This document shows positions 2,623 through 5,441 of a DNA stretch of 64,000 bases, piece after piece (the stretch's first letter is position 1; every line of letters starts with the position of its first letter). The notes below the pieces were generated by a model. It did not search any database and was not told the origin of the DNA. It saw only the letters and a program-made list of their open reading frames with translations. This stretch comes from Paraphysomonas bandaiensis (lineage: Eukaryota; Protista; Chrysophyceae): the NCBI GenBank assembly GCA_965644295.1, contig CBFFRP010000184.1, positions 74,060-138,059 on the forward strand, in the 5' to 3' direction. Both the position numbers and the translations under genes were made by a program.

Positions 2623-5279
2623 ATGCGTATTTCTACAAAACTACGTAAAGACTGCATCTCTTATTGTCGCACTATGTCCACAGCGAACACTTTCGATATC
2701 GGCACAACAGCTGATAATTCATTTATAAATAGTTTGAGAGCTGAGTGGTTAGACAGCGTTGGCGGAAATTATTCCAAGCCGCATGAAGTGAGAGAGGCTC
2801 ATTTCAGCTTTGTTCATACAGCAAAATTTGAAAATCCTTATCTAATTGCGGTCTCTGCTGATTGCGCAGCAACGATCGGAATAGATGGAGGGCAATTAAA
2901 TACTTCACGTTTTGTACAAGCTTTTTGTGGGAATGTTCTTCTTCCCGGGTTGGATAAGCCTTATGCGTCCGTTTATGGGTGCCATTGCTATGGGACTTGG
3001 TTTGGACAATTGGGTGAGTGAGATAAAAGAATGCATTTAATATTGTAAATATTTACACCACAGGAGATGGGAGGGCTATATGCCTTGGCGAAGTAATGTC
3101 TCCTTCAGATGGGTGGGTGTTTTTTGTGGTATACACGTAGTTTCTCTAAATTCTGCATGGCAGTCGGCGGTATGAGCTCCAACTAAAGGGAGCAGGCCGA
3201 ACTCCATACTCACGTGGATTTGATGGCAAGGCAGTGTTGCGATCATGCGTGAGAGAATTTCTTGCGTCTGAGGCAATGCATCACCTGGGTGTTCCTACTA
3301 CGCGCGCTCTTTCTGTACGTGACTGCAAACGCCTATAGTACTTGTCCCACTGGAGTACTCTACGCTGTACGCAGGTTGTGGGGACAGGAGAGACTGTATT
3401 GCGGGCTTGGTATGCAGACAACACACAGGATCGCAAACAAACTGCGTCTTCTACGGTATCTTACCCACACCCACCGCAATTGGCCAGGCGTGAACCCGGG
3501 GCAGTTATGTGTCGGTAAGTGTCAGCCGATGTGCCTGGGCCGTGACCTCGTTGGTGCTCATTATGCGGATACATTTCAGGGTATCGCCAAGTTATTTGAG
3601 ATTTAGTCACATTGAGCTCTTTGCGAAGCGGAAGGAATACAGGTGCTTTATTTTTGACTGGGTATTACATTAACTTGACAGATTCGTTTTTGCAGAGAGC
3701 TCGTGCAGATAGTTGATCACGCGATTTTCAGGTATAAGTACTTTTACGCATAGTTTGCCGGAGAATATGATGTATAATTTTTCAGAGAATTTGCGCACTT
3801 AGAATCTATTCCATGTCGACTCACGCGATACGTTCAGCTATTTCGGTGAGTACATGAAGAAGGTATTGCGAATGACTTTTCTGTACCAGGGAGATCATGC
3901 AGAGGAATGTTAGAGTTGTATGCGAATGGGACCGAGTCGGCTACGTCCAAGTTAGTACTACCTTGTGTAGTGGTACTTTGTAATCGTACCTATATACAGG
4001 GGAATATGAACTCCGATAACACAATGCTTGCTGGCAGAACCCTTGATTACGGTCCATATGGAATGATGGAGCGGTGAATATCGATTTCTTTAGCTTTTAA
4101 TATTTGACGTATAAGCAGATATGACCCTTATTTTCAGCCTTTTACATCGGATGCCGATAAGAAATTTTGCTTCTCACAACAGTCCACAGCCATAGGCGTA
4201 AATATCTCGGTGCTTGGTAGGTGACCTTGTGAAGCGTTCTTATGAACAATAACACACTATTGCCATCTGCTATGTAAATGGGTTGACAGTGGCATGTTCT
4301 GCAGGTGATAGCTTTGCTCTACTGATTAAGTATGTACATAAAGAATTGCATGATGCAAGCGAGACCAATGGTGCGGTGATTCCACTTGCTCTTGATCATT
4401 ATTTGGAAGAACTACGCCGTATTGCGACAACAGAGTTTCAGTCTTGTGTAGAGCATGAGTTTTCAGAAATGAGGTGCGTATTCCGCGTGCAATTTATGTA
4501 GGTGTAACTGTCTCTTTTACAGGAGAAGGAAGCTGGGTCTTTCGAATTCGGACAACCGAGTGTTATTTCTATGGAAACGTTTAGACACTCTGATGCAAAG
4601 GTTTTGTTAGATGTATCTAAACACCTCCTCATTTTTTATAGGACCGGGGTAGATTATGTAATCTTTTTTCGGCTGCTGTCCCACGCGATCTGCGACTACT
4701 CTCCCCAAAAAGTTGTAGATATTCTGAACCGTAGCGCATACAATGTAGTGAGTAGTGATGATTCGTCGATTCCCAAATGCTCATGTGAATATTTGCATAG
4801 GAAGTGCTTGATAATGAAAGCCTCCGCAGAGATTGGGAAAAGTGGTTCACATCGTACATTGAAATTATACAGGAGGTTATTCTCGTGAAAACTATGGTGC
4901 TTATTCTTACAATATACATAATAGGATGTAAGTTTAACTCCTATGGAGCGTGAAAATTTGATGAATTCAACGAATCCGAAATATATTTTGAGGTATTGTG
5001 CGACCTAGTTTTAAAGGTTAAGGTACATAACAAACTTCGAATAGGAATTGGATGGCCGCTATGGCTTACGAAAGGTACATTTTATTTCACTGTTTTGAGT
5101 TGTAATTTATACCTTTAAGTGCTGAGGAAGGAAACTATGAGCTGATTAACAAATTACTTGAGGTTCTTTCCCACCCTTATGAAGAGGGTTCAGATATGGA
5201 CGCAGAGAATTGGTTTCGCAAGACGCCACCATGGGCACAACACATGCCAGGCGTATCGTTCATGTCCTGATCCTCATAG
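2623..5279 (+). CDS. SELENOO: Selenoprotein O / YdiU-family protein adenylyltransferase (pseudokinase AMPylase) with C-terminal selenocysteine (UGA at 5268-5270); ~16 introns
   Basis: Spliced translation gives SelO motifs [60 protein letters not shown]...LDYGPYG and NPKYILRNW. It ends [22 protein letters not shown]. The start may be 2623 or the next ATG at 2674. Confidence 0.93.
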
Positions 5280-5380
5280 CCACCCTCACATGCCGGTATT
5301 TTTCAGTGGTGTGCATTGCACTCTTTAAGAATTAGGCTGACATGTAGGGTGGTGAACTGTAACTGCATAGTTTTATGGAC

Positions 5381-5441
5381 CTCGTCCGTGAATGACTTAG
5401 GTTGCGTTGATGCCAACGTGTCTTGATGATAACGGACTGAG
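5381..5441 (+). promoter_or_regulatory. SECIS element in the SelO 3' UTR
   Basis: Helix I is GTCCGT/ACGGAC. The core is A-TGAC (5392-5396) paired with TGAT (5427-5430), the non-Watson-Crick quartet with tandem G.A/A.G. Helix II is TTAGG-T-TGCGTTG / CAACGTG-T-CTTGA (13 positions) with an ATGC loop. It lies ~110 nt downstream of the in-frame UGA. Confidence 0.82.

Follow-up and report, generated by a model that had tools for sequence, protein, structure and literature searches.

SelO gene model and transcripts

The DNA analysed (the window) is a stretch of 64,000 nucleotides of Paraphysomonas bandaiensis, taken from contig CBFFRP010000184.1 (positions 74,060 to 138,059). Its SelO gene is the subject here, together with an in-frame TGA in the last exon of that gene and a hairpin in the 3′ untranslated region (UTR) that resembles a selenocysteine insertion sequence (SECIS) element. 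An initial annotation, made from the letters of the window, had proposed that the TGA encodes selenocysteine (Sec). The 3′ end of the gene reads GTA TCG TTC ATG TCC TGA TCC TCA TAG (VSFMS-U-SS-stop), and the annotation had given both the wording and the coordinates of this end correctly. Seventeen exons were joined (Table 1), yielding 1809 nt, or 602 codons and a stop. A frame check of these codons found a single internal stop, the TGA at codon 600.

Transcript contigs from four public runs (study codes P1, P2, P3 and P5) were placed on positions 2500-6500. Three of the runs were labelled with an organism and the origin of their RNA had been guessed by a tool, yet the contigs were spliced; the fourth (X5) was a marine polyA metatranscriptome. 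Over the whole transcript, 2513 to about 5552, the contigs of the four runs agreed with the genome at every position. The last transcript piece was unbroken from 5117 to 5552 (X1), 5532 (X2) and 5498 (X3), with 0 differences from the genome, and contigs of X5 tiled 5117-5515. Because this piece is unbroken and free of differences, the TGA is present in the RNA and the hairpin lies inside the 3′ UTR. Polyadenylation before 5381 and a TGC or TGT at 5268-5270 in reads had both been named beforehand as findings that would count against selenocysteine. Neither held, as transcripts reached about 5498-5552 and the RNA contigs kept the TGA.

The same contigs bear on a different explanation, in which the TGA is an assembly error or is spliced out with a 54-nt intron, giving the protein an altered C-terminus. 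The candidate intron has a GT at 5253 and an AG at 5305-5306, and with its pyrimidine-rich ...TTTTCAG (5300-5306) it resembles the SelO introns in size and sequence. No joint was found there in contigs from any of the four runs, and the conserved SelO end would become unrelated sequence. The intron was rejected as unused, and this explanation is exceedingly improbable.

Family membership and C-terminus

Pfam family PF02696 (SelO) was matched by one exon at 24.3 bits (cut-off 22.8) and by another at 19 bits. Exon 3 shared 74-81% identity with plasmid genes annotated as selO (tblastn). The complete model was aligned with three bacterial SelO proteins (local blastp), at about 33% identity and E values of 1e-85 to 1e-89, through the last residue. 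By this overall alignment the predicted gene product is a 602-residue SelO (protein adenylyltransferase, pseudokinase fold). The TGA at 5268-5270 falls on the Cys of the terminal ...SCSS in SelO of Polaromonas, Klebsiella and Riemerella, so that bacterial ends of the form ...VSCSS or ...LSCSS stand opposite ...FMS-U-SS.

Two eukaryote-like SelO genes, independent of the window gene, were obtained from metagenome contigs. The first (L055, JACLAD010008827.1, SelO at 13-1644, plus strand) is intronless, is 46% identical to the window SelO over 550 residues (local BLAST) and ends ...AYMS TGA TCA TCG TAG. The second (L051, SelO at 6046-9197, plus strand) has several exons with an insert in the last one, is matched exon by exon by the window SelO and ends ...AFMS TGA TCC TCG TAA. 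All three genes thus share Ser-Ser-stop after the TGA, with differing Ser codons. Conservation of these residues through synonymous changes points to selection at the protein level, and they are part of a protein only when the UGA is translated. The placing of a Sec codon at the Cys site of SelO, as first proposed, is borne out by both the bacterial alignment and the two metagenome genes. A metagenome scan with the last SelO exon alone gave no match, and a scan with a two-sequence alignment returned one locus, L055. Homologues found with SelO exon 1 were relatives at 43-49% only, too distant for an analysis of hairpin covariation.

Selenocysteine machinery and other selenoprotein genes

The genome was searched for the components of Sec synthesis and insertion. 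Its single tRNA-Sec gene (Table 1) scored 69.6 bits (Rfam cut-off 47) and was called tRNA-SeC with anticodon tca by ARAGORN. SepSecS was found at 426 bits, and exons of selD/SPS were found. The first exon of eEFSec had human eEFSec as its best match (PDB, E 1.5e-18), and a C-terminal exon matched only eEFSec domain IV (PDB, E 1e-19). This factor was recognised only by reading exons. Pfam PF25461 (SelB barrel), a family that is bacterial only, had no match, and TIGR00475 was discarded as a finder of eEFSec, since many GTPases match it, BipA being the top one among the open frames tested. An SBP2-like L7Ae exon was closest to human SBP2 (E 1.6e-7, versus 1e-3 for Snu13/L7Ae). Another L7Ae match, on contig C297, resembled RNase P p38 more than SBP2 and was rejected. 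The candidate for PSTK was a second, weak KTI12-family locus. The Sec machinery that the initial annotation expected in this protist is therefore present, PSTK being a weak candidate only, and a lack of tRNA-Sec and EFSec, which it had named as fatal to its proposal, did not hold.

Other genes carry an in-frame TGA at known Sec sites: several GPx loci (ASL-U-GTT), two SelM/Sep15 genes (CPG-U-RLNRL and CSG-U-KLNRL) and a SelK-like gene. The SelK-like gene ends ...CAAGG*G*CCPL*, and its two in-frame stops may be two Sec codons or a Sec codon followed by a stop. Rfam calls of mir-297 and similar families beside selenoprotein genes (L018:370-1334 and L028:1782-2245) were low-complexity false positives on long (ATGT)n microsatellites.

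A change of the genetic code, with UGA as a general sense codon and no SECIS needed, was also weighed. No point in support of it was found. Only one TGA occurs in the 602 SelO codons, 16 open frames of 400-1277 codons in loci of this genome were free of TGA, four of the 16 end at TGA, and in the other genes examined TGA was present solely at known Sec positions. Such a change has next to no likelihood, in agreement with the earlier view that recoding is specific to the site.

SECIS-type elements and the SelO hairpin

A strict canonical scan (helix II with at least 7/9 pairs) gave no candidate downstream of the GPx or SelM genes, which led to a signature specific to this genome. Rfam SECIS_1 was likewise of no use: its best score over the whole genome was 22.6 bits, giving no usable match, and at seven other selenoprotein loci, GPx and SelM included, it gave only microsatellite false positives. 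A blank result with this family on SelO is uninformative, because the GPx and SelM loci give no match either.

Reading the 3′ UTRs directly gave a common design, consisting of a helix I of 6-9 bp, GA-AUGA-C, an inner hairpin, UGAU-A/G and the second strand of helix I. Elements of this type were located behind GPx and SelK-like genes and downstream of an Rdx-family match (Table 1). No part of the signature is missing from the SelO hairpin or from four other elements, and one GPx element (L017) differs only by GG for GA. Two of the elements (L015 and L023) are without AA, like the SelO hairpin. Most carry an apical (U/G)GA(N), which is UGAUG in SelO. Two short forms, behind a TGA-containing GPx (L018) and a TGA-containing SelM (L025), share a layout in which helix I (6-8 bp) and GA-AUGA-C lead into a helix II of just 4 bp and a GAA-containing loop, and UGAA follows. 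The hairpins behind the two metagenome SelO genes also begin AUGA-C.

The SelO hairpin starts 105 nt past the TAG, and the UGA is 124 nt upstream of its AUGA core. Folding of 5340-5460 gave a minimum free energy of -33.2 kcal/mol (z = -2.1), with the GA/GA quartet present between two helices. Helix II begins U-A, U.G in SelO and G-C, G-C in the seed elements. Other SECIS candidates in the UTR (GUGA at 5352, AUGA at 5504 and others) had weak folds and wrong spacing and were rejected.

Two covariance models were used. With R1, built from four elements with SelO left out, the SelO hairpin was the best match in the window. With R2, built from seven seeds and run on the UTR only without filters, the hairpin scored 16.8 bits (E 8e-4). 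Neither model recognised the hairpins of L051 or L055. A plain signature was also defined (GAATGAC, 15-50 nt, TGAT, 0-2 nt, helix I of at least 6 bp). Its only occurrence in the window was the SelO hairpin, and 20 Mb of simulated first-order Markov sequence contained two; the chance expectation from simulation was 2.7e-5 per UTR of this size. With the TGA also standing on the conserved SelO Cys, the observation exceeds chance.

Reading of the SelO UGA

A number of observations weigh against reading the UGA as selenocysteine. Neither AA nor CC stands 10-13 nt after the quartet (C G U U is there, and the loop is AUGC). The published SECISearch pattern, in which AA/CC is required, would reject the hairpin (PMC2375036), and Rfam SECIS_1 (RF00031) gave no match to the SelO UTR at E ≤ 10. 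The base after AUGA opposes U, forming a C.U mismatch. The R1 score was 17.1 bits, with an E value of about 0.09 over the window, and the same model gave a chance match of 16.5 bits in an apparent PHD-finger coding exon (45942-46010, minus strand, without the 3′ GA). With default filters R2 missed the hairpin in the window. The signature was first noticed on the SelO hairpin, so its 2.7e-5 is partly post hoc.

The hairpin accordingly agrees with the textbook definition of a SECIS element only in part, and it counts as one only by comparison with the other selenoprotein genes of the genome. The SECIS-shaped hairpin of the initial annotation, placed about 110 nt downstream, is in place and has an AUGA/UGAU core. 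It departs from the textbook form in its apical part and has no Rfam match.

In a rival reading the UGA is a plain stop, the protein ends three residues short at ...FMS and the hairpin is an unrelated UTR structure. The lack of an Rfam match and of apical AA or CC fits this view, as do covariance scores that are weak across the whole window, and some termination at a UGA so near the end is likely anyway, at a cost of only three residues. The UGA lies exactly on the conserved Cys, however, Ser-Ser-stop is kept past it in three divergent genes with synonymous differences, and the genome has a full Sec system and several selenoprotein genes with hairpins of the same design. A plain stop is unlikely on this evidence, less remotely so than splicing or a change of code.

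The window SelO is thus, very probably, a selenoprotein with Sec at residue 600, as far as sequence can tell. In favour of Sec at the UGA are the alignment with Cys, the conserved Ser-Ser-stop, the transcripts, the machinery, the other selenoprotein genes and the hairpin signature. The mechanism proposed is taken from the established eukaryotic Sec pathway, and in it the hairpin would serve Sec insertion. When a ribosome arrives at the UGA, the SBP2-like protein would be bound to the kink-turn core of the hairpin and would recruit eEFSec with Sec-tRNA (anticodon UCA) to this codon. Sec would be inserted in the place of the conserved C-terminal Cys of SelO, two Ser would be added and translation would end at the UAG. 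Some ribosomes probably stop at the UGA, leaving out the last three residues. If human SelO is a guide, the C-terminal residue active in redox chemistry would be the Sec (PMC3994087). Gene callers will cut SelO three residues short and lose this residue, and the gene will escape standard SECIS tools.

Comparison with known SelO genes and SECIS elements

Human SELENOO ends Cys664-x-x-Sec667-Ser-Ser. Its Sec incorporation was demonstrated by 75Se labelling in human cells, and its C-terminal Sec makes redox interactions (PMC3994087). The window gene belongs to the same family as vertebrate SELENOO, with the predicted Sec likewise third from the end before Ser-Ser and the SECIS-like element likewise in the 3′ UTR of the last exon. 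Human SelO has CxxU, whereas F-M-S-U is found here, without a Cys three residues before the Sec position. Absence of this Cys has been reported for distant SelO homologues (PMC3994087), and the bacterial proteins look alike. In contrast to the vertebrate element, the hairpin here is much smaller, has a 4-nt loop and has neither AA nor CC in place. The SECIS element of mammalian SelO has CC instead of the usual AA (PMC3316567), which is therefore absent both there and here. Bacterial SelO/YdiU resembles the window protein over its full length, at the identity given above, and in its C-terminal motif. It differs in having Cys for Sec, no recoding and no introns.

Sec-containing SelO outside vertebrates has been published since 2007, for Ostreococcus tauri, O. 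lucimarinus and Porphyra haitanensis (PMC2375036), and SELENOO is listed among algal selenoprotein families (PMC7539508). As is predicted for the window, these are non-animal eukaryotes whose Sec-SelO has a SECIS element in the 3′ UTR (PMC2375036, PMC7539508). The Ostreococcus and Porphyra elements were found with the AA/CC pattern and are of type I or II, whereas the hairpin here would fail that pattern (a comparison by description). Sec-SelO in this genome is an expected annotation point, as algae and vertebrates were known to have it. The list of marine protists with a Sec-type SelO grows by one, here with a complete Sec system in the genome, in keeping with the published association of large selenoproteomes with life in water.

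The compact, AA-less style of the SECIS elements is the more interesting side. In Dictyostelium a lineage-wide signature, TGTAATGATT...AAA...TGAT, has been described (PMC2375036). The likeness is in a sequence fixed within the lineage around the AUGA/GA core and in a mismatch right after the core, the form here being GA-AUGA-C...UGAU-A. The difference is that Dictyostelium keeps an apical AAA at 10-12 nt, while the SelO, L015 and L023 elements are without AA. Tentatively, the present lineage may use a stripped-down SECIS class with an invariant GA-AUGA-C...UGAU-A core, in which the apical AA is dispensable, (U/G)GA(N), often UGAUG, stands instead and a helix II of about 4 bp is possible; the balance is somewhat against it. 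Such a class would escape Rfam SECIS_1 and searches based on AA/CC, the SBP2 and eEFSec of the lineage would recognise less RNA than textbook models demand, and too few selenoproteins would be counted in related protists. The L051 and L055 hairpins hint that the compact AUGA-C form is wider than one species. The descriptor specific to this genome, seen behind GPx, SelK-like, Rdx-family and SelO genes, could serve to find the remaining selenoproteome of this organism and could help to ask how much of a SECIS element is needed.

Table 1. Coordinates of the SelO gene and its hairpin in the window, and of Sec-related features elsewhere in the genome (locus handle before the colon).
Feature	Position	Strand	Basis or remark
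SelO coding region	2623-5279	+	17 exons, 16 GT-AG introns of 41-88 nt; splice joints from transcript contigs
SelO exons 1-6	2623-3013, 3064-3112, 3164-3314, 3375-3514, 3580-3642, 3696-3731	+	
SelO exons 7-12	3786-3845, 3890-3950, 4000-4073, 4119-4216, 4305-4473, 4523-4600	+	
SelO exons 13-17	4642-4747, 4801-4875, 4925-4992, 5045-5074, 5120-5279	+	
Spliced SelO transcript	about 2513-5552	+	RNA contigs
Last SelO exon	5120-5279	+	Preceded by AG at 5118-5119; C-terminal 50 residues of three bacterial SelO align
In-frame TGA, codon 600, predicted Sec	5268-5270	+	Alignment with bacterial Cys; L051/L055; RNA contigs
Ser codons TCC TCA and true stop TAG (5277-5279)	5271-5279	+	Window sequence
SelO 3′ UTR, about 273 nt	5280-5552	+	Transcript contig ends
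SECIS-like hairpin	5384-5437	+	Fold and signature of other selenoprotein 3′ UTR elements; within transcribed 3′ UTR
Helix I, GUCCGU/ACGGAC, 6 bp	5384-5389/5432-5437	+	
GA; AUGA; C	5390-5391; 5392-5395; 5396	+	
Helix II, 5 bp	5397-5401/5422-5426	+	Followed by 2x2 internal loop UU/GU
Upper helix, 6 bp	5404-5409/5414-5419	+	4-nt loop AUGC at 5410-5413
3′ core UGAU; A	5427-5430; 5431	+	UGAU opposite AUGA
Single tRNA-Sec gene, 87 nt, anticodon TCA	L001:1500-1586 = G000:C339:26360-26445	-	T run directly after
SECIS-type element	L015:2385-2445		Behind GPx
SECIS-type element	L017:1162-1108		Behind GPx; GG for GA
SECIS-type element	L020:1171-1116		Behind GPx
SECIS-type element	L023:1448-1392		Just downstream of Rdx-family match
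SECIS-type elements, tandem	L033:1501-1564 and L033:1666-1727	+	Behind SelK-like gene; 27.8 and 25.7 bits
Short-form SECIS-like element	L018:2149-2191	+	Behind TGA-containing GPx; R1 24.7 bits
Short-form SECIS-like element	L025:1830-1866	+	Behind TGA-containing SelM

Neighbouring features

A dispersed repeat (5716-6385) lies between the 3′ end of SelO and the next gene. It matched no Rfam family. At least 40 copies at 80-89% identity were found over many contigs (3136 first-look candidates), and RNA contigs of the repeat, in many variants, reached a depth of up to about 2e5. The motif GCATCCGGG occurs three times within it, at about 6013-6100. At 45900-46500 on the minus strand, the coding exons look like those of a bromodomain and a PHD finger, judged by reading the sequence and not by a family scan.

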